From: Chrysemys picta bellii
Lineage: Eukaryota
Assembly: GCF_011386835.1 (NCBI RefSeq)
Contig: NC_088810.1
Coordinates: forward strand, 1,488,001 to 1,552,000
Direction of reading: 5' to 3'
DNA length: 64,000 nt
The translations under genes and the position numbers were made by a program. The notes below the pieces were generated by a model. It did no database searches and was not told where the DNA came from. It saw only the letters and a list, made by a program, of their open reading frames with translations. Shown piece after piece: positions 1,952-16,370 of this stretch. Positions within the stretch are counted from its first letter, which is position 1; every line of letters starts with the position of its first letter.

Positions 1952-4355
1952 TGGCGCCCATCTGGGACACCATAGGCTGTGTGTCTAATTCATCTCCCCC
2001 TGCCCAATCCCAGGACTCCAGCCAGCCCCCCCCCCCCTCCACTGGATGTGCCCCTGGCCCAGGATATGCCCTGGGAGATAGCGGCTAGGGGTGGCCCTGG
2101 GTGAGCCGCTTGGGGGAGGGGGGGCAGGGGAGGCTGGATGGGACCGTGGGGCGAGACATGGGGCCAAGGCCACACATCTGGGGCAGAGCTTCCAGCGACT
2201 GAGCCACCCACTGCTGACCCCTCAGCTTGTCACTGTTCCGCTGGCTGCCCACCCCATGGCCAAGGCGCCCTCTGGGCTGCCCCATGCCCCCAAAGGGAGG
2301 AGGGACTGAGGGGGCTGGGGCCTAGGGCTTGTCGCTCTGTGGGACTCATGTAGGGCCCGGGCCCTACAGGAAGCCCTTGGTCCTATATAGCACTTCAGGG
2401 CCGAGGCCCCCCTGCACTATAGCCCCAGTGCAAGGGCAGGGCCTGTGGGTGCAGTGACCAAGTCGTGAAACCCTCCCTCACGGTTACAGAGGGGCCTGGG
2501 GCCCGTCCGCACACAGTCTGGGAGCATCACAGCCCTGGGGCTGCAGCTCCAGAGAGATGGGGGTGGGAGAAGCTGGAGTCACAGCCCAGAGGCCCCCCGG
2601 CTTGTGGGGGGACAGTTTCAGCCCCATGGGCTGCGCGAAGCAGCAGAAGCAATGAGACCAAACCTGGGATCGGTACAAGGTCAAGAACAGAAAAGAAACC
2701 GCCCCGAGAGTTTTTCTTTAGGGGGTAGAAGGTGGGTCAACTGGAGGGGCACCAGCTAAGCTGGTGGAGCAGGGCTGGGATTGAGGGGCACCCACAGGGG
2801 GTGGGGGGCAAGGCTGGGCCTCATGGAACATTTTGATTGGCTGCAGTTGAGATGGTAGGGGGGGAAGAGCAGTTTGTGACAGGAAGTGAAGCTGCGTCCT
2901 GGACCATCCCCATTCCTCAGCATCCCAGGCCATTGTCTCAACACACAGATCAGCTGAGTGGGGTCCTGGTGCCCTGGCCCGTGTCACCGCCACTGCCCCG
3001 CTGTGGGGCAGGAGTTCTCGCTGCATCCCAGCCCCCCACGCTGCAGCCAGCCCCCCTTCCTCTGATTTTGAAATCAGGCTTTGCAGTTCCTACGCGTCCC
3101 CAGCAGCTGAAGGCAGAGCCTTTCCCATTCCCCCAACCCTGGGGCTACATGCCCATGGCTCCTTGTAGCCTTCCCCTGCCCTGCAGCCAGCCCCGCCTGG
3201 CTCCAGCCCGCCCCAGGAGACAGACACCCTGTCCTGTGCTCAGCTTCCATCTCTTTATTGTTTCCATATGAAAAAATAGGACCGTCTCCTCCCCCCAGTG
3301 CCCCCGCACGGCCCCGCAGCCTGGTATGGGAGCCCGGCTCTCCTCAACACCCCACATCTCCTCCCTTCCACTCCACACTGCCCCCAAAAACTTCCTTCCC
3401 ATGGCTGCCCAGCTCCGCCCCGAAGCAGTGAAGATGCACGCCCCCTTGGGGAGCAGGCAAGTGCCCCTGGCAGCGGGTCTGGGACCCCTACAGCACTGGG
3501 CAGTTATACTGGTACAACCGGGCTTATAGTGGCTGTAGGGGTAGACTGGTGTAACGGCCCTTCGTATTGGATTAAGTGCCTCTGTGCCAGGGGCTGCACT
3601 GGGATAACTCTAACAGGGTGAAAGTCACCCCAGCGCTGACACAGTTTACCGGGACAAGCTCTGGGTCCAGCTCCGCTCGGGAAGTCAGAGAGATCCCGCC
3701 ACACTGCAGGGTAACGGGGACCAGACACGGGCTCCGGAAAGCTCCCCCCTGCCCCCAACACAGAAAGGTCCTCTCCCGCCAGGACTCCAGCCTCCACCCG
3801 GGCTAGAGAGTGATGGTCGGTGCCGTGGAGGGCTCGGTGCTTGGCTGCAGGGGAGGCGCAAGGCGTTTATGGGAGGAAGAGCAGGGTGTGGAGAGAGATG
3901 CTGTGGGGTGCGTGTCGCAGACGGACACGGACACAGGGGGATGGGGGGGCGTGTTTCAGATGGCAGCCCCCTGAGACGGCCAGCCCTCCTGCCCTGGGAC
4001 CGGATAGGAGCCCGTGCTCCCTAGAGGGGACAGGCCCGGTGCCCATTCGCCGTCCCCCTGAGCTAGCCAATCCCCCACCTTGGGGCTGGATGGGAGCTGG
4101 CACCCTCTAGAGGGGAAAGGCCCCATGTCCTGCTCCATCCAATCCGCTCAGTTCCGTCAATGTCCTTCCAGTCCCATTCTAGCTCGACTTCCTGCCAGGT
4201 GGCGCCTGCTGTCCCAGCTCCCAGAGCTGATTGGAGTGGGCTTGGTGGCAGAAGAGGGGGCATCCTGCTGCAGTCCCAGCTCTCCCCACTGGGGCTGGAG
4301 GGGGCGCTAGAGCTCCTGGGGCGGCACCAGAGCCCTCAGGCCGCGGCGTGGGGCG

Positions 4356-5404
4356 CTAGAGCTCGCCACGGGCATGCCGGATGTAGTGTTCGTGCAGGCC
4401 GGCCTCCTGGGTGAAGCTCTCGCCGCACTCCGTGCAGGAGTAGGGGCGGGAGGGCAGCAGCTCCAGGGGGCGCTGGTGGGAGGCCTGGTTGGCGGCGCAG
4501 GTTGGAGAGTTGGCGGAAGCTCTTGCCGCAGTCGGGGCACTGGTGGGGCAGGCTGCGGCCGGCGGCGTGGCCCAGCCGGTGGCGCTGGTAGTTGGCCAGC
4601 TGGCCGAAGCGGCGGCCGCAGTCAGAGCACTCGAAGGCGGGGCGCAGGCAGTCGGGGCAGTCGGGGGGCGGGGCGGGGGCGTGCCCACGCTGGTGGCAGA
4701 TGAGGGCGCGGGAACTCTCGAAGGGCTTGCTGCAGATGAAGCAGACGAAGAGGGCGTCGCGCAGATTCTCCTGCACAAAGTCCTCGGGGTGCTCCCGCTT
4801 CATGTGCCGCTCCTTGAACTTCTCGTCCGGGAAGGTGATCAGGCAGTGGAAGCACTGGTTGGAACCCAGGCGATCTGGGGGGGCGAGGGAGAGCTCAAGG
4901 CTCCAGCCTTGGCTGACCCCCACCCCGAACTCCATGCCCAGCCTGGGCTCCCCACGCCACCCGCCTCCCCCCGCCGCCGGGATCCCTAACTCCTTCTGAG
5001 CTGCATACCCCGGTGGTGGGGAGGGGGAACGGGGCTGCCCTCCCCGAGGGAAGGGCTGGGAGTCCTGGCATTGCGGGGATCTGGAAGGCAGGGTGCAGTT
5101 CCCCATGGGAAGGGCCAGGAGCCCCAGTGCTATGGCGTTTAAAGCCCTAGAGAACAGACACAGGAAATGGCAGTGACCACCTCCGGTACTTACAGACAGG
5201 GCTGTTGCTGGAAGAGGCCTTGACCTTCCCCTCGGGGCTGGGCCGGGCGGGTTCATCCTCGATGCAGATCGGCTCCAGGTCGGAGCTGGGGCACCGTGTC
5301 CGGGCCGGGGTAGCCTCCTGCTTGGCAGGGAGCGCAGGCCGCGCTGGGATCTCCTGCGGGAGCGGTTCAGCCAGGGGCTGCTTCTCGGCTGTGACTTCAG
5401 ACAT
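4356..5404 (-). CDS. ZNF576: ZNF576 (coding exons 5404-5194 and 4874-4356; five C2H2 fingers if a 1-bp insertion at 4489/4490 is removed)
   Basis: CFHCLITFPDEKFKERHMKREHPEDFV...LFVCFICSKPFESSRALICHQRGH and terminal CTECGESFTQEAGLHEHYIRHARGEL* match recalled human ZNF576. The GTAAGT donor (5193) and CAG acceptor (4876/5) are phase-1 compatible. Total 730 nt = 3n+1. Likely non-coding exon 1 ends at 6217 (GTGAG). AATAAA on - at 3254-3259. Confidence 0.9.
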
Positions 5405-6693: not shown

Positions 6694-6879
6694 GGCCGCC
6701 AGGACGCTTCCCCAATGAGGCGGGGTGACAATTCAGGGGCAGCAGCAGGTTGCGGGCTCCTGCGGGAGGCGACCCACCATGATATCCCAGGGTGCACCGG
6801 GGCACGGAGAGGCCTATTCCCAGCGAGCACAGAGGCATCCACCCCCCACGTTCCCATGATGCACCAGGGAGTGGAGAGC

Positions 6880-7330
6880 CCCCTATTCCCAGCATGCACT
6901 GGGGTCTGGAGAGCCCTAACTTCCCAGCATGCACTGGGGGGTGCAGAGCCCCAACTTCCTAGCATGCACTGGGGGGTGCAGAGCCCCAACTTCCCAGCAT
7001 GCACTGGGGTCTGGAGAGCCCCAACTTCCCAGCATGCACTGGGGGGGTGCAGAGCCCCAACTTCCCAGCATGCACTGGGGGGGGGTGCAGAGCCCTAACT
7101 TCCCAGCATGCACTGGGGGGGGGGGGTGCAGAGCCCCACATTCCCAGAGTGCACTGGGGTGTTCAGAGCCCCAAATTCCCAGCATGCTCTGGGGCATGGA
7201 GATCCCCAACTTCCCAGGGTTTACTGGGGTGTTCAGCGCCTCAAATTCCCATGATGCACCAGGGAGAGGAGTGCCCCATATTCCCAGAATGCACTGGGGT
7301 GTTCAGCGCCTCAAATTCCCAGGGTGCAGT
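6880..7330 (+). repeat. ~37-41-bp minisatellite whose unit contains a ZNF143 (SBS) motif
   Basis: About 10 units of agagccccAACTTCCCAGCATGCACTGGGgg; the core TTCCCAGCATGCACTG fits the Staf/ZNF143 consensus. Confidence 0.8.
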
Positions 7331-7620
7331 GGGACATGCAGGGCTGTGCTGCAGGGTGGAGGTCAGCCAGGGCGCCCCCTTTCCTCTCCCAGGCCGGGCT
7401 GGCCCCAGCGTGGCCCTGCGCTGCCAGCAGTGCCCATTCAGCAGCCGCGCTTTCATCAGCAGAGTTTCCCATCAACACAGAGCAAAGGTCCTGTCCGGGT
7501 CTCCCTTTTATTTCTGATTGAAGGAAAACAGACAAGAAAGAACTAATACAAAGTCTGCGCTGCGGAGGGCCCAGTGTGTGTGTCCCTGGCTAGAACATCA
7601 GCCTCGCTGAGCTCAGCAGG

Positions 7621-7849: not shown

Positions 7850-10567
7850 CTACTCCTTGGCATGGGCTTGGTGCAGCATCCGCTCTGCGTCCTCCGTCAT
7901 CTCTGCCAGGGCCTGTGTCAGCAGCCTGTAGGTGGCCTCCAGGGAGATCTCAGGCTGCCCCTCGGCCCCGCGGCCCCAGTAGGGCACAAAGTTCCACATT
8001 CGGGAGGAGAAGGGCGCTGGCTTAGTGATCTGCTTCAGCACCTGCTCCGGGTCCAGCCGCTTGACCCAGGGGCTCCGGATCTCGGCCTGGAGCAGCCCGG
8101 CCGGCTTCCCTGTGGCTTTGGCCACCTGGGCCAAGGACTCCTCGTCCAGGCCCAGCTCGATGGAGAAAGCCGAGATTGTGTCGACGAGGCTGGTGGCCAC
8201 ATCCGGGCCAGGTTTCTCTGCGTAGTACAGGCAGGTATTCAGGGTCTTGCCCCAGACGTCCTTCATCAGCGCCTTGCTCTTCCTCCTCACCAGGCGGCTC
8301 AAGGCCACGGGGATGGCCTTCTCCAGTGCCTCCCTCTTCAAGGCTGGGGCATCGCTCTCCAGGGCCGCCCGGAGGGCCGGCAGGTCGTAGGCCTCGCGGA
8401 GAAGGCTGGAGACGAGGAAGACCCTGGGGGAGCCCACGCCGTCCTTCTGGAGGGCATCCACACAGCTGCTCCGGATCTCCTCCAAGGGGCCGGGCTCGGG
8501 GCCGGGCTCAGAGCCGGGCTGGGCGTCCACATCCACCTTGGTCCTGATGAAGAAGAACCGCTTCCCGGCCGCGCTGATGGCCCGGGCGAGCTGGCTCTGG
8601 GCGTGGCGGTAGCGCTCCGAGGCCGTCAGCAGGAAGAAGTCGTAACGGGACAGATCCAGCCGCCCCACGTCCTCCTCCGTTACCCCCACTCCCGGCAAGT
8701 CCCACAGATACAGGCCAGGCACGGTGGGGTGGGCGTAAGCTGTGGCTTTCCGGGTGGTGGCCATCACCCCCGTGGGTGCTGCCTCTGGCTCCCCGCAGCC
8801 CACCCCCCTCAGAGCGTTCACCAGCGCCGACTTGCCCGAGCCAGCCTCCCCCAGCACTGCCACGTCCAGCCGGATCTGCGAGGGCTCCTCCAGCGCCGAG
8901 CGGATGATGGCAGGCACCCCTGCCAGTCCCCCCGTGGCACAGGCCTGGTACAGCTCTTGGGTCTTCCTCGTGTTCACAGCCCTCAGGTCGTCCAGCTCCC
9001 CGTCCTGGGCCCTGCACAGAGAGGACGGGACGGGGGGATTGGAGCCCCTCTGCTGAGCTTTGGGTAGAGAGGAAGCTTGTACCTGGTGTCACTGGAACCC
9101 AGGACACTTGGGGTCTGGTCCCAGCTCAGCCACAGACACCCTGTGAGTCACTGCCTCTCTCTGGGCCTCAGTTTCCCCACCTGTATGTAGGAGAAGGAGC
9201 CTTCTTTTGTCTATGCAGAATGGAAGCTCCACCTCTTAGAGGATGTGGGGCAGGGACTGGGGCTTGGGCGGGGTCTATGCAGCGCCCCATAGCGGAGCCC
9301 CTGTTCTCGAGCGGGGTCTATGCAGCGCCCGGCACAATGCAGCACTTAGTGTGATGGGGCCCCGCAATACCCAGTGGGGAAGTTTCACTGCAGTTTCTGT
9401 TAAAAAGCTGATTTTTCAAAGTGCTGTAAAATTTCCCCCACTCCCCTCCCAGAGCCAGAACCCAGGAGTCCTGGCTCCCGGCCCACCTGCTCTGACCCAC
9501 TAGACCCCACTCCCCTCCCAGAGCTGGGGAGAGAACCCAGGAGTCCTGGCTCCCGGCCCCCCTGCTCTGACCCGCTAGACCCCACTCCCCTCCCAAAGCT
9601 GGGGAGAGAACCCGGGAGTCCTGGCTCCCGGCCCCCCTGCTCTGACCCGCTAGACCCCACTCCCCTCCCAGAGCTGGGGAGAGAACCCGGGAGTCCTGGC
9701 TCCTGGCCCCCCCTGCTCTGACCTGCTAGACCCCACTCCGCTCCCAGAGCTGGGGAGAGAACCCAGGAGTCCTGGCTCCCGGCCCCCCTGCTCTGACCCG
9801 CTAGACCCCACTCCCCTCCCAGAGCTGGGGAGAGAACCCAGGAGTCCTGGCTCCTAGCCCCGCTCCACTCACCTCTTCAGCTGGATTAGCTCCTCCTCCA
9901 GTTTGTCCTGGAACTGGCTGAACTGGTACCTGTCCGTCTCCAGGGCCGAGACCAGGAAAACCCTGTTGGGCTCCAGCCTGTTCTTGGCCAGCACCTCGGC
10001 CACCCCGTTCCGGGCCAGCGCCAGCGCCTCGGCCGAGCTGTACCGGGCCTGGAACCGCCGCTTGGCCGTGTGCAAGTCCAGGTCCACCTTGGTGCGCACC
10101 ACGTAGTAGGGCTTCCGCTTCTGCTGGAAGGCCTTGAGGAGCTGCAGGTGGGGATCTGCCGGGCTTCCCTCGGCCACCACCAGCACCAGGCAGGTGAACT
10201 TCCCCAGGTCCCCCAGCCGCTTCGTGTAGTCGCCCGGCTTCTCCGGCTCCTGGAAGCCCGGGAGATCCCACAGTGCCAGGTTGGGGTAGGTGGGGTGGGT
10301 GTAGCCGGCCGGCTGCCCCGGGGGTTCCGGCGCCTGCTGGAAGAAGGCCTGGGCGTTGTCCAGGCCGGGGCGTTCTCCCACGAGGGCGTGGATCAGCGTG
10401 GTGACCCCGGCGGCCCGGCGGCCCACCACAGCCACGTCGACCTTCAGGGTGTTGACCGAATCCACCAGGGCCTGGAGGCGGGCGGCGGCCGTGACGGGGT
10501 CGTGGGCTTCGTAGCGGGTCCGCAGCTCCCGGAGGAAAGCGTCATCCAAGCCCACCGGGGCTGCCAT
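7850..10567 (-). CDS. Tandem double-domain immunity-related GTPase (IRGQ/IRGC family), 618 aa; coding exons 10567-9873 and 9011-7850
   Basis: GCCATGG start after an acceptor at 10578/7. The donor AG|GTGAGT (9872) and acceptor TGCAG|G (9013/2) join in phase 2 (Arg); 695+1162 = 1857 nt. Domain 1 motifs: GRRAAGVT, LWDLPG, TKVD. Domain 2 motifs: GEAGSGKS, TGVMATT, LWDLPG, TKVD. AATAAA on - at 7507-7512. Confidence 0.88.
9110..9190 (+). mobile_element. CORE-SINE (MIR-like) fragment
   Basis: The segment ctctctgggcctcagtttccccacctgta is the CORE-SINE hallmark. Similar cores occur near 29950, 35140, 42395, 46040 and 49655. Confidence 0.6.
9440..9860 (-). repeat. Array of ~74-bp tRNA/SINE-head-like repeat in the IRG intron
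   Basis: About 5-6 units of ggagccaggactcctgggttctctccccagctctgggaggggagtggggtctag...gagcag on the - strand. Confidence 0.9.
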
Positions 10568-10981
10568 GGCCCACCGCTGCGAGGGGAAGAAAGCTGGAGT
10601 CAGGACTCCTGGGTTCTCTCCCCGGCTCGGGGAGGGGAGTGTGGGCTGGTGGTTAGAGACGGGGCCAGGACGCCTGGGTTCTCTGGGGGAGACGGGGGGT
10701 CAGGACGCCTGGGTTCTCAGGGGAAGGGGGGAGACAGGACCCCTGGGTTCTGGGGGGGTGATGGTGGTTGGGGGGGGACCAGGACGCCTGGGTTCTTGGG
10801 GGGGGGGGGGGGCTGGGAGCCAGGACGCCTGGGTTCTCTGGGGGAGACGGGGGGGTCAGGACGCCTGGGTTCTCAGGGGAAGGGGGGAGACAGGACCCCT
10901 GGGTTCTGGGGGGGTGATGGTGGTTGAGGGGGGGGACACCAGGACGCCTGGGTTCTCGGGGGGGGGGGTCCAGCCGCTCAC

Positions 10982-11126
10982 CCGCAGTGGGTCCCTCCCG
11001 GCCGATGGCTCCAGGCCCAGTGACAGCGGGGCCGGGAAATAGAAACCGACGCGGCGGCTCCTCCCCGCGGGGGCCGGGCCGGGCCGGGCCGGAGGGGGAG
11101 GAACCGGGAGAGACGCCGGCGGAGCC
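10982..11126. promoter_or_regulatory. Bidirectional GC/CpG-rich promoter and first exons of the two IRG genes, with an ISRE at 11034-11047
   Basis: Outward-facing donors: GTGAGC on - (10981) and GTGAGT on + (11127). GGGAAATAGAAACC fits the ISRE/IRF consensus GAAANNGAAAC. Confidence 0.75.
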
Positions 11127-11149
11127 GTGAGTGCGGGAGGGAGCGATCG

Positions 11150-11900
11150 TGTGACCCCCCCCCGGCCCCCTGCAGCCCCCGATCCGCCCCCCCTCCCTTG
11201 CACCCCCATCCTCCCCCCGAGCCGCCCCGTGCACCTCCGATCTGCCCCCTGCAGGCCCCGATCTGCCCCCCGCTCCCCGTGCACCCCCGCCCCATCCCCT
11301 GCACCCCCCATCCTCCCCCCGAGCTGCCCCCTGCACCCCCCGTCTGTCCCCTGCCCCATGCACCCCCGATCCGCCCCCTGCATCCCCTGATCCCTCCCCT
11401 GCACCCCCTCTGGCCACCCCCTTCACCCCCCTCCCCATGCACTCCCTGATCCATCCCCTGCACCCTCCTCCGTCCCCTGCACCCCCTCTGTGCGCCCCCA
11501 TCATCCCCCTCCCCATGCACCCCCGCCCCATCCCCTGCCCTATGCACCCCCCATCCTCCCCCCGCCCCGTGCACCTCCGATCCACCCCCTGCATCCCCTC
11601 TGTCTGCCCACTTCACCCCCTTCCCGTCCCCTGCACCCCCTGATCCACGCCCTTCACCCCCCACCCCGCCTCCTGCACCCCTTTCCCGTCCCCTGCACCC
11701 CCAATCCACCCCATGCACCCCCCAATCTGTCCCCCTTTGCCCTCCGCCCCGCTTCCTGCGCCTCCCCATGCATTCCCCTGCACCCCCCGATCCATCCCCC
11801 TGCACCTCCCGATCCGCCCTATGCACCCCCTCCGTCCCCCTTCGCCCCCTGTCCATGACCCCTGATCCATCCCCCTGCACTCTCCTCTGTCTGTCCCCGT
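11150..11900 (+). repeat. C-rich degenerate low-complexity repeat (cccctgcacccc) in IRGQ intron 1
   Basis: Direct inspection; it explains several spurious Pro/Gly-rich ORFs. Confidence 0.85.
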
Positions 11901-12102
11901 GTACCCCCAATGTACCCCCCTCGGTTTATCTGTCCCTGTGCACATCTCTCCATCTGGTTCAGGAGGGGGCTGGGGTATTGGGATGGGCTGGGATCAGGGC
12001 GGGGTGGGGCAGGGGCAGGAGGGGGTGGGGGCAGGAGGCAGACCCCCGGAGCCACGCCCCCCCCCCGACAATCACTTCTCTTTCTGTCTCCGCAGCACCC
12101 AG

Positions 12103-14492
12103 ATGAACGAAGCCCCAGACCCCGAAATGCCCCCGCAGCCCCCGGTGGACACCTCGCCGGGCTCCCCGGACCGGGGCGACGTCTCGGTGGTGATCGTGGG
12201 GGCGCCGGGCTGCGGCAAGTCGGCCCTGCTCAACGCCGCGCGGGGCCTGGTGGAGGACGACGCCCGCGCGGCCCCGCTGGGGGCCCCGGCGAGCTCCGGG
12301 GGGCCCGTGCTGTACCCCGACCCGGCCCGGCCCAACCTGCTGCTCTGGGAGCTGCCCCTGACAGAGGGCGAGGGGCCGGAGCGCTGGCTGGCCGAGGGGG
12401 ACGTGGTGCTCCTGGCCACCGACGGGCTATTCGGTGCCAGCCATGCCCGCCTGGCCCAGGAGGCCCGCGGCGCCGGCAAGACGGTGCATTTCGCCCGCAC
12501 CAAGGCTGACCTGGACCTGCACACCCTCCGGCGGCTCCTGGGAGAGCGCTACGACCGGGCCCAGGCCCTCGACGCCCTCCGGGCCGCCTGCACCCAGTCC
12601 CTGGTGGCCCATGGCCTCGGGGAGCCCCTGCCTGTCGTCTTCCTCGTCTCCGGCCACGAGCCCCGAGAGCTGGACGGTCCCCTGCTGCGCCAGGCTCTGG
12701 TGGGAGACGTCAGGATGTACGAGAGGTGCGGCTTGTTTATTGTAGGGTCTCTCAGGTGGGCCGCTGTTGTGGGGATGCTCGGGAGAGGTAGGGCTGGTTT
12801 GTTATTGTGGGGTTTCTTAGGGAGACGAGTGTGGTTGCTGCGGGCGGAAGGGCCTCAGGTGGGGTGATATTGTAGGGTCTCTTTGGAGGGCTGCATGCAG
12901 TGTTTGTTATTGTAGGGTCTTTTGGTGGGTTCATTTTATAGGGTCTCAGGTGGTTTGTTATTGTAGGGTCTCCCAGAATCCCCAACACCCAGCCTGTCCC
13001 TCCATGTCTCACCCTCACTAGTCCCCCCCACTCCTCATCCCGTGTCTCCCCTGCTCTGCCTCTCCCTACTCCCGCCCCATACTCCCCGGTCCTTTCTTAC
13101 TCTGTTCAGTCCCCCCCAGCATCTCATGTCCCCTCTACCTCCCCCCCAGTATTCCCCATTGTCTTATGCCCCCGGTGCCATCTGGCATCTCACACTTTCT
13201 GTGCGCTCCCCCCCACCGGTGACCCCCATTGTCTCACGCCCCCGTGCCCCCTGGTGCCCCCATTGTCTCACGCCCACTGTGCCCGTAGGGTGCTGCGCCC
13301 CACGCTCTCCGGATTTGAGCAGATCAGCGAGCGGGAGGTGGCCGAGATTCAGGAGGCCTACGAGCTGGGCGGCCTGGCGGAGGTGGTGACCCGGGTCCAG
13401 TGCAGCCTGGAGACCCTGTGGAACGCCCGGCTGGATGTGGCCGTCACGGGGGAGTCAGGGGCTGGCAAGTCCACCTTCGTCAACGCCCTGCGAGGCCTGA
13501 GTGACGAGGACGAGGGGGCGGCCCAGACCGGCGTGACCGAGACCACGGCCCAGCCCACGGCCTACCCCTATCCCGGCTACCCCAACGTGACGCTGTGGGA
13601 CCTGCCGGGCATCGGGACGCCCAGCTTCCGGGCCGACCGCTACCTCGAGGCCGTGAATTTCACTCGCTACGACTTCTTCATCATCCTGGCCTCGGAGAGG
13701 TTCAAGGAGAACCACGTCCGCCTGGCCCGGGCCATCGTGGAGCAAGGCAAACGCTTCTACTTCGTGCGCGCCAAGGTAGACAACGACCTGGAGGCCACGC
13801 GGAGGAGGAAGAACCCGCCCGAGGAAGAGGAAGTGCTGGAGGAGATCAGGAGGGATTGCCGGGAACGGCTGGGTCAGGCCGGGCTGGGCGACGCCAAGGT
13901 CTTCCTCCTCAGCAGCTTCGAGATGGAGAAATACGACTTCCAGGCCTTCGAGGACACCTTGGAGCGAGAGCTGCCCGGGCACAAGCGTCACGCCTTCCTC
14001 CTCTCCCTGCCCAACCTCTCGGGGGCCATCATCGAGAAGAAGCGGCAGCTGCTCCACCAGGAGGTCTGGAAGGTGGCCTTGGTCTCCAGCCTGGTGGCCG
14101 CCGTGCCCTTGCCGGGGCTGGCCTTCACCTGCGACGTCTCCATCCTGCTGAGGAAACTGGCCGCCTACCGGCAGGATTTCGGGCTGGACGCGGCCTCCCT
14201 GGCCCGGCTGGCGGAGAGGGCCGGGAAGCCGCTGGAGGTGCTGCGGGCCGAGGTGCGCAGCGTGCTCGGGCGCAGCATCAACAAGGAGGTGGTGATCGGG
14301 CTGCTGGGGAAGGCCACCGGCGGGGGCTTGGTGGTGGTCAACTTCTTCTTCCACCGGATCCCCATCTACGGGGCGCTGGCCTCCGGGGGCATCTCCTTCC
14401 ACACCACCTACTCCATGCTCAGCCAGTGCCTGGAGGAGCTGGCGGCCGACTCCCAGCGGGTTCTCGTCAAGGCCTTCGACAGCGAGGTCTAA
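12103..14492 (+). CDS. IRGQ: IRGQ orthologue, tandem double-domain IRG, 608 aa; coding exons 12103-12725 and 13289-14492
   Basis: Acceptor CGCAG at 12094/5. The donor AG|GTGCGG (12726) and acceptor CGTAG|G (13287/8) join in phase 2 (Arg); 623+1204 = 1827 nt. RGDVSVVIVGAPGCGKSALL resembles recalled human IRGQ QGDVTALFLGPPGLGKSALI, and GFEQISEREVAEIQEAYELGGL resembles GFEVLGAAELEAVREAFETGGL. Domain 2 has GESGAGKS, TGVTETT, DLPG and AKVD. Syntenic with ZNF576 and PINLYP-like genes. Confidence 0.85.
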
Positions 14493-14785: not shown

Positions 14786-16370
14786 TGCCCCAGGGCGGCG
14801 CTAGGGGGCGCTGTGCCGCAGGGAGCGGGGTGGGGGCTCTCCCCCGGTGCCCCAGGGCGGCGCTAGGGGGCGCTGTGCCGCAGGGAGGGGGGTGGGGGCT
14901 CTCCCCCGGTGCCCCAGGGCGGCGCTAGGGGGCGCTGTGCCGCAGGGAGCGGGGTGGGAGCTCTCCCCCGGTGCCCCAGGGCGGCGCTAGGGGGCGCTGT
15001 GCCGCAGGGCGCGGGGTGGGGGCTCTCCCCCGGTGCCCCAGGGCGGCGCTAGGGGGCGCTGTGCCGCAGGGAGCGGGGTGGGGGCTCTCCCCCGGTGCCC
15101 CAGGGCGGCGCTAGGGGGCGCTGTGCCGCAGGGAGGGGGGTGGGGGCTCTCCCCCGGTGCCCCAGGGCGGCGCTAGGGGGCGCTGTGCCGCAGGGCGCGG
15201 GGTGGGGGCTCTCCCCCGGTGCCCCAGGGCGGCGCTAGGGGGCGCTGTGCCGCAGGGAGGGGGGTGGGGGCTCTCCCCCGGTGCCCCAGGGCGGCGCTAG
15301 GGGGCGCTGTGCCGCAGGGCGCGGGGTGGGGGCTCTCCCCCGGTGCCCCAGGGCGGCGCTAGGGGGCGCTGTGCCGCAGGGAGGGGGGTGGGGGCTCTCC
15401 CCCGGTGCCCCAGGGCGGCGCTAGGGGGCGCTGTGCCGCAGGGAGGGGGGTGGGGGCTCTCCCCCGGTGCCCCAGGGCGGCGCTAGGGGGCGCTGTGCCG
15501 CAGGGAGCGGGGTGGGGGCTCTCCCCCGGTGCCCCAGGGCGGCGCTAGGGGGCGCTGTGCCGCAGGGCGCGGGGTGGGGGCTCTCCCCCGGTGCCCCAGG
15601 GCGGCGCTAGGGGGCGCTGTGCCGCAGGGCGCGGGGTGGGGGCTCTCCCCCGGTGCCCCAGGGCGGCGCTAGGGGGCGCTGTGCCGCAGGGAGCGGGGTG
15701 GGGGCTCTCCCCCGGTGCCCCAGGGCGGCGCTAGGGGGCGCTGTGCCGCAGGGCGCGGGGTGGGGGCTCTCCCCCGGTGCCCCAGGGCGGCGCTAGGGGG
15801 CGCTGTGCCGCAGGGCGCGGGGTGGGGGCTCTCCCCCGGTGCCCCAGGGCGGCGCTAGGGGGCGCTGTGCCGCAGGGAGGGGGGTGGGGGCTCTCCCCCG
15901 GTGCCCCAGGGCGGCGCTAGGGGGCGCTGTGCCGCAGGGCGCGGGGTGGGGGCTCTCCCCCGGTGCCCCAGGGCGGCGCTAGGGGGCGCTGTGCCGCAGG
16001 GAGGGGGGTGGGGGCTCTCCCCCGGTGCCCCAGGGCGGCGCTAGGGGGCGCTGTGCCGCAGGGAGGGGGGTGGGGGCTCTCCCCCGGTGCCCCAGGGCGG
16101 CGCTAGGGGGCGCTGTGCCGCAGGGAGCGGGGTGGGGGCTCTCCCCCGGTGCCCCAGGGCGGCGCTAGGGGGCGCTGTGCCGCAGGGAGCGGGGTGGGGG
16201 CTCTCCCCCGGTGCCCCAGGGCGGCGCTAGGGGGCGCTGTGCCGCAGGGAGCGGGGTGGGGGCTCTCCCCCGGTGCCCCAGGGCGGCGCTAGGGGGCGCT
16301 GTGCCGCAGGGAGCGGGGTGGGGGCTCTCCCCCGGTGCCCCAGGGCGGCGCTAGGGGGCGCTGTGCTGCA
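14786..16370 (+). repeat. 26 x 62-bp near-identical GC/CpG-rich tandem array with a CTCF motif in each unit
   Basis: Unit ccccagggcgGCGCTAGGGGGCGCtgtgccgcagggagcggggtgggggctctcccccggtg. First and last units start at 14788 and 16338 (1550/62 = 25 intervals). The core matches CTCF 13/14. Confidence 0.95.

Follow-up and report, generated by a model that had tools for sequence, protein, structure and literature searches.

The 64,000-nucleotide stretch of Chrysemys picta bellii DNA analysed here (NCBI RefSeq assembly GCF_011386835.1, contig NC_088810.1, positions 1,488,001 to 1,552,000 of the forward strand; hereafter the window, numbered from its first letter) carries four long open reading frames (ORFs) at 7850-14492, each matching the Pfam family PF05049 (IIGP) of the IRG GTPases. 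The locus consists of two divergently transcribed three-exon genes, one on the reverse strand (the - gene) and one on the forward strand (the + gene), each encoding a truncated N-terminal IRG G domain followed by a complete IRG unit. We consider it likely that these are two real spliced genes which share a promoter containing an interferon-stimulated response element (ISRE), the + gene being the turtle orthologue of mammalian IRGQ and the - gene its ancient paralogue.

Organization of the locus

The N-terminal units come from the inner ORFs, which lie at 9869-10567 on the - strand (PF05049 E=1.5e-26 over profile positions 21-222 of 375) and at 12103-12725 on the + strand (E=8.9e-22, G-domain part only) and span only the G-domain portion of the profile, approximately positions 21-225 of 375. 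The outer ORFs, 7850-8977 on the - strand (E=3.5e-66) and 13254-14492 on the + strand (E=1.2e-100), supply the C-terminal units and span the whole IRG fold (profile positions 2-372 and 8-331 of 375). AlphaFold models of both proteins are helical past the G domain of the C-unit; by profile coverage, the N-units consist of a G domain only. The best PDB matches of the domains were Irgb10, Irgb6 and Irga6.

Inner and outer ORFs are joined in frame on both strands. On the - strand, position 9873 is spliced to 9011 (donor AG/GTGAGT, acceptor tctgtgcag/G) and, on the + strand, 12725 is spliced to 13289 (donor AG/GTGCGG, acceptor cccgtag/G). Both coding junctions are in phase 2, an AGG arginine codon being split after its second base. 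The joined products have 618 amino acids (-) and 608 amino acids (+), with one terminal stop each. The former aligns without gaps, with six substitutions, to an annotated Chrysemys protein of 618 residues (P0121), and the latter, likewise gapless and with seven substitutions, to an annotated Malaclemys protein of 608 residues (P0001). Both outer exons lack an in-frame ATG preceding the P-loop, so a stand-alone IRG cannot be made from them.

In the - gene, the non-coding exon 1 occupies at least 10982-11009, its start lying further up, and ends at the donor CTGCGG/GTGAGC. Intron 1 (10577-10981) is repeat-rich and falls within the 5' untranslated region (5'UTR). Exon 2 (9873-10576), whose acceptor at 10576 reads ttcttcccctcgcag followed directly by CGGTGGGCCATG, contains 9 nt of 5'UTR, the ATG at 10567-10565 and the truncated G domain (residues 1-232). 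After intron 2 (9012-9872), exon 3 (7850-9011, its first base being 9011) encodes the full IRG unit (residues 232-618) up to the stop codon at 7850-7852.

In the + gene, the donor GAGCC/GTGAGT at 11126/11127 sets the 3' end of exon 1 (11060-11126), which is non-coding in this species and homologous to exon 1 of Elgaria and of a squamate transcript described below. Intron 1 (11127-12096) is a C-rich degenerate minisatellite. Exon 2 (12097-12725) starts translation at the ATG at 12103 and encodes the truncated G domain (residues 1-207). Intron 2 covers 12726-13288, and exon 3 (13289-14492) encodes a linker, the full IRG unit (residues 208-608) and the stop codon. Gene models from pleurodires, with the N-terminus MEAVAEP/TQMN, use a junction homologous to that from 11126 to 12097. 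In these models (P0002, P0368; Emydura L009 7990-8010) the ATG lies inside exon 1 and adds about 9-11 residues; the emydid exon 1 lacks this ATG, so that the start codon of the + gene has moved to exon 2.

Transcript evidence

Evidence for splicing came from two public intron-less contigs of other reptiles. The first, L003 (SRR22107230), from a related turtle, shows 85-88% nucleotide identity and aligns without gaps over the - coding sequence. It joins the - exons exactly, exon 2 ending at contig position 731 and exon 3 starting at 732 (732-1893 gapless), with intron 2 missing. Its first 28 nt correspond to exon 1 and define the 5'UTR junction from 10982 to 10576, thus crossing the exon 2 acceptor and skipping intron 1, and its alignment extends the 3'UTR of the - gene down to at least about 7512. 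The second contig, L004 (SRR12656983; squamate, 4232 nt), contains both ORFs uninterrupted and head to head, with the same junctions, intron 2 of the + gene being absent from it. The two real start codons are separated in this contig by 225 nt. As a single contig holds both spliced mRNAs, both were present in one sample and their 5' exons overlap or abut.

The preliminary description of this DNA had predicted that the four IRG ORFs splice into proteins of 618 and 608 amino acids, and the in-frame junctions, the annotated proteins and the two contigs bear this out. Its supposition that the pair was undescribed in reptiles holds for the literature, full-text searches having returned no account of the pair, nor of an IRGQ from reptiles that has kept its motifs, nor of the paralogue. 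It does not hold for the databases: both genes already have two-domain models in RefSeq/Ensembl, covering more than 30 reptile and amphibian species and carrying the uninformative name 'interferon-inducible GTPase 5-like'.

The + gene as the probable counterpart of IRGQ

In mammals, IRGQ comprises an N-terminal G domain and two LC3-interacting regions, LIR1 at residues 186-189 and LIR2 at residues 421-424 (PMC13172515), and its IRG-like long exon is devoid of GTP-binding motifs (PMC1297648). A profile built from 19 orthologues of the + protein matched the N-domain of human IRGQ (8q6q_C) with E=1.1e-8 over chain residues 4-190, and the single + N-domain sequence matched the same chain with E=6.4e-5. 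Neither a profile of 23 - orthologues nor the single - sequence reached 8q6q_C.

AlphaFold models of the + and - proteins, with mean predicted local distance difference test (pLDDT) values of 79 and 76, were searched by Foldseek against the Swiss-Prot models. The + model aligned with mouse and human IRGQ at 27% and 26% identity, with a template modelling (TM) score of 0.46-0.48 and E=2e-26 and 2e-24, compared with 22% and 21% identity, a TM-score of 0.22 and E=1e-20 and 6e-16 for the - model. Residues 22-600 of the + protein are colinear with residues 2-616 of human IRGQ, through both domains.

The exon boundary is also shared. The human long exon, as given in the supplement of Bekpen et al., opens with RLLPPAQDGFEVL, and turtle + exon 3 opens with RVLRPTLSGFEQI, that is (R)VLRPTLSGFEQI, at the same residue. 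A hand count over the first 55 residues of the human long exon gave 24/55 identities with the turtle + protein, 25/55 with that of the alligator and 17/55 with the - protein. Counting from the start of this exon places the human FEVL at 186-189 and WEVL at 421-424, in agreement with the published LIR numbering. The counterpart of LIR1 in the turtle is FEQI (13314-13325, + strand; residues 217-220), located at the end of a low-confidence linker (pLDDT below 50 at residues 208-217, with a helix from 222). The LIR1 pattern [F/Y]xx[I/L/V] is present in 18/19 + orthologues and in no member of the - family. In addition, NCBI labels the proteins of crocodile, newt and lungfish that are nearest to the + N-domain as IRGQ or IRGQ-like.

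Judged by these sequence matches and the predicted fold, the + gene is orthologous to mammalian IRGQ and less derived than it. This fits the earlier claim that mammals keep only an IRGQ-like sequence here. The nucleotide motifs of the IRG unit, whose destruction defines a 'quasi-GTPase', have kept their canonical form in turtles, tuatara, a caecilian and most squamates and are destroyed in the alligator, Anolis sagrei and Bombina; the turtle + gene is therefore an IRGQ orthologue by descent and not a quasi-GTPase by motif.

Several searches did not bring out this relationship. When 1.84 billion representatives were scanned by HMMER with the + N-domain as query, the 150 matches listed contained no mammalian IRGQ. 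The crocodile 'IRGQ' model P0356 retrieved two crocodilian proteins only, and neither it nor the alligator N-domain, as single queries, matched 8q6q. Foldseek against the PDB listed 50 matches, all canonical IRGs and Der-type GTPases, with 8q6q absent among them, and feature searches of the ESM-Atlas with both N-halves returned generic IRG G-domain clusters without discrimination.

Age of the pair and conservation of its arrangement

Orthologues of both genes were found in turtles, squamates, tuatara and caecilians, and crocodilians hold both too. No mammalian counterpart of the - gene was present among the 120 matches listed. In a tree of 100 G domains, the + N-, + C-, - N- and - C-domains formed four separate clades with Shimodaira-Hasegawa approximate likelihood-ratio (SH-aLRT) supports of 96, 98, 100 and 99, and the IRGQ-like proteins of newt and lungfish fell within the + clades. 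Most other tandem IRGs (from cichlid, gadid, coelacanth and gecko, and further ones from turtles) have halves that are mutual nearest relatives. The four separate clades indicate that the pair arose by an old duplication of a gene which already had two domains and not by recent fusion, and since caecilians carry both genes, the duplication would predate the amniotes. The phylogeny thus identifies the - gene as an ancient paralogue, already present in the tetrapod ancestor.

The arrangement is conserved as well: the order zinc-finger gene (-), - gene, + gene, Ly6/uPAR gene (+) is shared by Malaclemys, Emydura, Elgaria, Eublepharis, Pantherophis, Anolis sagrei and Alligator. The synteny check suggested by the preliminary description therefore shows the head-to-head pair kept in turtles, lizards, a snake and the alligator.

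Other domain layouts were encountered among the relatives of the + N-domain. The newt P0353 (802 amino acids) and lungfish P0218 (831 amino acids) carry two truncated G domains and then one full IRG, and it is the second unit of each that is orthologous to the turtle + N-domain. Among the nearest relatives of this domain is also P0236 (606 amino acids) from the bivalve Mercenaria mercenaria, with a truncated G domain followed by a full IRG. The IRG family is considered vertebrate and cephalochordate, in which light this mollusc protein is odd.

GTPase motifs and selection

Comparison of the G1, G3 and G4 motifs of the four domains revealed that they differ in state, as had been claimed earlier. 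The + C-domain has the full canonical IRG set, with G1 GESGAGKS (13449-13472, + strand), G3 DLPGIG and G4 AKVD (TKVD in squamates), together with the equivalent of Irga6 Glu106. The - C-domain is largely canonical (G1 GEAGSGKS, 8828-8851, - strand; G3 DLPG; G4 TKVD) and has at Irga6 position 106 an alanine in turtles and caecilians and a glutamate in many squamates. This numbering is taken from the gapless alignment of the + C-domain with Irga6 residues 70-189, and the role of position 106 is presumably the one assigned to it in work on Irga6. The + N-domain keeps G1 (GAPGCGKS, 12199-12222, + strand) and G4 (TKAD), with a degenerate G3 (WELPL). In the - N-domain, G3 (DLPG) and G4 (TKVD) are kept and G1 fails: it reads GRRAAGVT (10400-10423, - strand), the P-loop lysine being replaced by a valine. 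The + C-domain, from its motifs, looks like a working GTPase.

The G1 of the - N-domain reads GAGV(T/S) in all turtles and squamates and GK(S/T) in caecilians and in protein P0152. This distribution dates the change from lysine to valine to the sauropsid stem, since when it has been retained. As seen in these alignments, the - gene defines a previously unnamed tandem IRG subfamily with a GX4GV(S/T) P-loop.

The ratio of nonsynonymous to synonymous substitution rates (dN/dS) against Malaclemys was 0.12 for the + gene and 0.93 for the - gene, the latter from few changes; against L003, the - gene gave 0.42. The C-domain of the turtle + protein is 83.5% identical to that of Elgaria, 84% to tuatara, 60% to a caecilian and 48% to the alligator. 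These values indicate strong purifying selection on the second domain of the + gene and a faster evolution of the - gene.

The promoter interval

The first-exon donors, 10982 on the - strand and 11126 on the + strand, are 145 bp apart. The interval between them has a G+C content of 76% and a CpG observed/expected ratio of 0.67, and contains no TATA box and no gamma-interferon-activated site (GAS). It does contain an ISRE-like element, GGGAAATAGAAACCG, at 11033-11047 (+ strand). Within this element, GAAATAGAAAC at 11036-11046 is the sole match to the strict ISRE core (GAAANNGAAAC) in the 64-kb window, where 0.21 would be expected by chance. The first exons are thus clustered around an ISRE, in line with the preliminary description.

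The element, followed by the same flank GCGGCGGCTCCTCC, is the only strict match in the Malaclemys, Emydura and Elgaria loci too. In the pleurodire Emydura it reads GGGAAACAGAAACT, a full consensus, and in Elgaria it is located about 90 bp upstream of the exon 1 donor of the + gene. At the homologous alligator site it has decayed to GAGAAGCGAAAC. By these comparisons the ISRE is of old origin and has been maintained in turtles, without being universal. We infer that in turtles the pair may share one bidirectional promoter responsive to IRF/ISGF3, from which both genes would be co-transcribed in response to interferon.

Alternative explanations

Several points weigh against the reading of the locus as an IRGQ orthologue and its paralogue under a shared ISRE promoter. 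Firstly, no strict ISRE lies between the genes in four of the five squamates (Eublepharis, Pantherophis, Anolis sagrei and Hemicordylus), Elgaria being the exception; interferon control is consequently not a general property of the pair. Secondly, the aromatic residue of LIR2 is absent, the aligned reptile sequence being EEVLEE, and the last helix of human IRGQ is slightly nearer to the - family (10/16 against 8/16 by hand count). Thirdly, the orthology rests on the profile match, fold colinearity, exon boundary, motif and gene naming, the IRGQ-like proteins in the tree being non-mammalian ones. The synteny argument takes the human order to be PINLYP-IRGQ-ZNF576 (19q13.31), and the orientation of the Ly6/uPAR gene differs from that map. 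Fourthly, the shares of sequence words found in sequencing runs agree with the presence of both mRNAs but are ambiguous: 14 runs presumed to be RNA, a status which is a guess, hold 0.48-0.58 of 7850-14492 (exonic fraction 0.58), and for 12400-13600 run X1 has a share of 0.69, compared with the value of about 0.49 to be expected from the exons. Finally, GTP binding and hydrolysis by the second domain of the + protein and ATG8 docking through the exposed motif FEQI are proposed from motifs alone.

The absence of the ISRE from the gecko, the snake, the anole and Hemicordylus also favors an explanation in which the pair is constitutive, either housekeeping or tissue-specific like mammalian IRGC and IRGQ, the ISRE being incidental or a relic. 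The CpG-rich interval lacking TATA and GAS elements resembles the islands of broadly expressed genes; the + gene is very conserved (in dN/dS and in the identity of its C-domain between turtle and lizard), unlike the fast-evolving effector IRGs; and its C-domain is nearest to IRGC, with 45-46% identity. However, the single strict ISRE of the 64 kb falls between the two donors and, together with its flank, persists in three turtles, one of them a pleurodire, and in Elgaria; it decays in the alligator, where the GTPase motifs decay, and the - gene is fast-evolving. We regard constitutive expression as possible, though on the unlikely side. A clean correlation between the presence of the ISRE and intact motifs was considered and rejected, as the gecko, the snake and Hemicordylus keep their motifs without a strict ISRE.

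The decay of GTPase motifs bears on a further explanation, namely that the two proteins form an obligate inter-gene module of effector and regulator, an extension of the pairing suggested in the preliminary description, in which the nucleotide state or membrane targeting of one tandem IRG would be under the control of the other, in the way that GMS proteins act over GKS proteins in the mouse. The second-domain P-loop is lost in three + orthologues, those of the alligator (GPPGTSTQ), Anolis sagrei (EEGEKEGA) and Bombina, and these have only 41-52% C-domain identity to the turtle, the alligator included even though it is the closer relative. In the alligator and Anolis, the frame of the - gene is still open with G1, G3 and G4 gone in both domains, and the intergenic interval contains no strict ISRE in the alligator or Anolis sagrei. 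This would amount to two or three independent joint losses: the alligator, Anolis and possibly the mammals, in which no - gene was detected and IRGQ is degenerate. The joint loss in the alligator and Anolis mildly supports some functional coupling of the two genes. The differing motif states of the four domains, the clustering of the first exons within 145 bp, the head-to-head arrangement kept for about 280 million years and the presence of both mRNAs on one squamate contig point in the same direction. In contrast, snakes and Pogona have altered P-loops in the - C-domain (GSGNS, GSGRS) beside a canonical + gene, hence the coupling is not strict; concerted decay is equally explained by the loss of a shared selective pressure, and just two or three independent lineages display it. 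Moreover, the domain with the lysine-to-valine change already has a partner at hand in cis, the GKS domain of the same protein, and regulation within the protein is therefore at least as likely as regulation between genes; a partner in trans is not needed to explain the anatomy of the pair. An obligate module of this kind therefore seems unlikely to us.

Within the reading that we prefer, an IRGQ orthologue with an ancient paralogue, the + protein could be a GTP-regulated relative of the ATG8-binding autophagy adaptor IRGQ, and the degenerate, truncated N-domains could serve as built-in pseudo-GTPase partners regulating the C-domains in cis. Where the partner gene has decayed or was not found (mammals, crocodilians and Anolis), IRGQ may have become a nucleotide-independent scaffold. 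In its full form, this scenario would make the IRGQ of non-mammalian tetrapods a GTP-switched, interferon-inducible autophagy receptor working with a partner tandem GTPase, the loss of which led to the loss of the IRGQ motifs and ISRE and to a constitutive scaffold; we offer it as a speculation and think it doubtful as a whole.

A different assignment, with the - gene as the true IRGQ orthologue or both genes as co-orthologues from a sauropsid-specific duplication, is very improbable. The linker of the - protein does open with AQDG, comparable to human PPAQDG, its last helix is marginally nearer by the hand count given above, and the fold colinearity with IRGQ holds for the - model too. Against this stand the caecilians, which carry both genes and place the duplication before the amniotes, the human IRGQ N-domain, which is matched by the + profile only, the identity, TM-score and E-value, all of which favor the + protein, and LIR1, found in the + family alone. 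That four single-domain IRG genes or pseudogene fragments have been wrongly joined, as the ORF track by itself might suggest, can be dismissed, being already refuted by the intron-less contigs L003 and L004, which join the exons exactly, and being at odds with the C-domain exons lacking an ATG ahead of the P-loop, with the phase-2 junction and ORF lengths conserved in more than 30 species and with the purifying selection on the + gene.

Neighboring genes and repeats

A C2H2 zinc-finger coding exon lies at 4339-5256 on the - strand (Pfam zf-C2H2, E=2.7e-12), and this gene may be the counterpart of ZNF576. Annotations of Malaclemys, Emydura and the alligator show an equivalent zinc-finger gene upstream of the pair. 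A tandem repeat of 35 bp x 13.7 (6844-7333) separates the zinc-finger gene from the 3' end of the - gene. On the other side, about 300 bp past the + stop codon, a 62-bp tandem array starts at 14786 and continues past 16000 (19.6 copies in the scanned range, 98% matches), each unit containing GCGCTAGGGGGCGCT, which resembles a CTCF core.

The introns are also filled with repeats. Tandem copies of 75 bp x 5.4 (9457-9861) and 156 bp x 2 (10664-10968) occupy intron 2 and intron 1 of the - gene, and share the core CCAGGAC(T/G)CCTGGGTTCTC. Since this core is found again in the intergenic region of the alligator (L005 8400-8560) and many times in the Malaclemys locus, it probably represents a dispersed repeat family common to turtles and archosaurs. 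The minisatellite in intron 1 of the + gene (11165-11850) has units of 20-79 bp with the motif CCCCTGCACCCCC and creates spurious long ORFs on both strands.

Comparison with known systems

IRGQ, which has recently gained importance as a receptor in autophagy for MHC class I quality control and as an ATG8 hub, has been treated as an orphan pseudo-GTPase. The selective-autophagy receptor (FKSG27; human Q8WZA9, mouse Q8VIM9) shares with the turtle + gene its plan of an N-terminal G domain, a linker with LIR1 and a full IRG unit, and the likeness may extend to the C2H2 zinc-finger and Ly6/uPAR neighbors, seen flanking the pair in seven species and putative counterparts of ZNF576 and PINLYP. It differs in its second domain, where the turtle protein has GESGAGKS, the Glu106 equivalent, DLPG and (A/T)KVD and the human and mouse proteins have AGKADVGLV / TVPLG and no G4. 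The turtle + protein also lacks the LIR2 aromatic residue and the long acidic/Gly-rich insert. The + gene has its ISRE promoter in common with a paralogue for which the 120 matches listed included no mammalian sequence. Its N-domain is encoded by one exon, compared with three short exons in mammals (PMC1297648).

Tandem IRGs such as the mouse Irgb tandems and the zebrafish irgg-irgq1 transcript likewise carry two IRG units per spliced transcript, and one half has been proposed to regulate the other (Bekpen et al. 2005, PMC1297648). A zebrafish quasi-GTPase has SGVS as its G1 in the supplement of the same study, which is the same lysine-to-valine change as in the - N-domain. The turtle pair differs from these tandems in that its four domains belong to four old clades, whereas halves that are mutual closest relatives point to recent internal duplications, and in that its N-units are truncated after the G domain.

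The GMS regulators (Irgm1-3) and GKS effectors of the mouse resemble the turtle pair in having a substitution of the P-loop lysine, conserved over hundreds of millions of years, beside a canonical GKS and in their ISRE-type promoters. However, the turtle change is from lysine to valine and not to methionine as in GX4GMS, and the domain that bears it is truncated and joined in cis to one of the GKS type; neither turtle protein groups with IRGM. IRGC (interferon-inducible GTPase 5, 'cinema') is the best Swiss-Prot match of the + C-domain and likewise highly conserved, and this match is the source of the automatic name 'interferon-inducible GTPase 5-like'. Unlike the turtle pair, IRGC has a single domain, and turtles possess other, separate IRGC-like genes of one domain.

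Bekpen et al. 2005 left the origin of IRGQ open (PMC1297648). The comparisons presented here suggest that the IRGQ lineage is old, reaching back at least to lungfish, with an ancestral second domain that looks like a working IRG GTPase. LIR1 would be older than the mammals, the aligned site of reptiles having no LIR2 aromatic residue, and IRGQ would once have had a head-to-head paralogue, which was not detected among the 120 matches mentioned above in mammals. The turtle and lizard genes on the one hand, and those of the alligator, anole and mammals on the other, may thus provide natural 'before' and 'after' forms for assessing the contribution of the GTPase cycle and the route from enzyme to scaffold.

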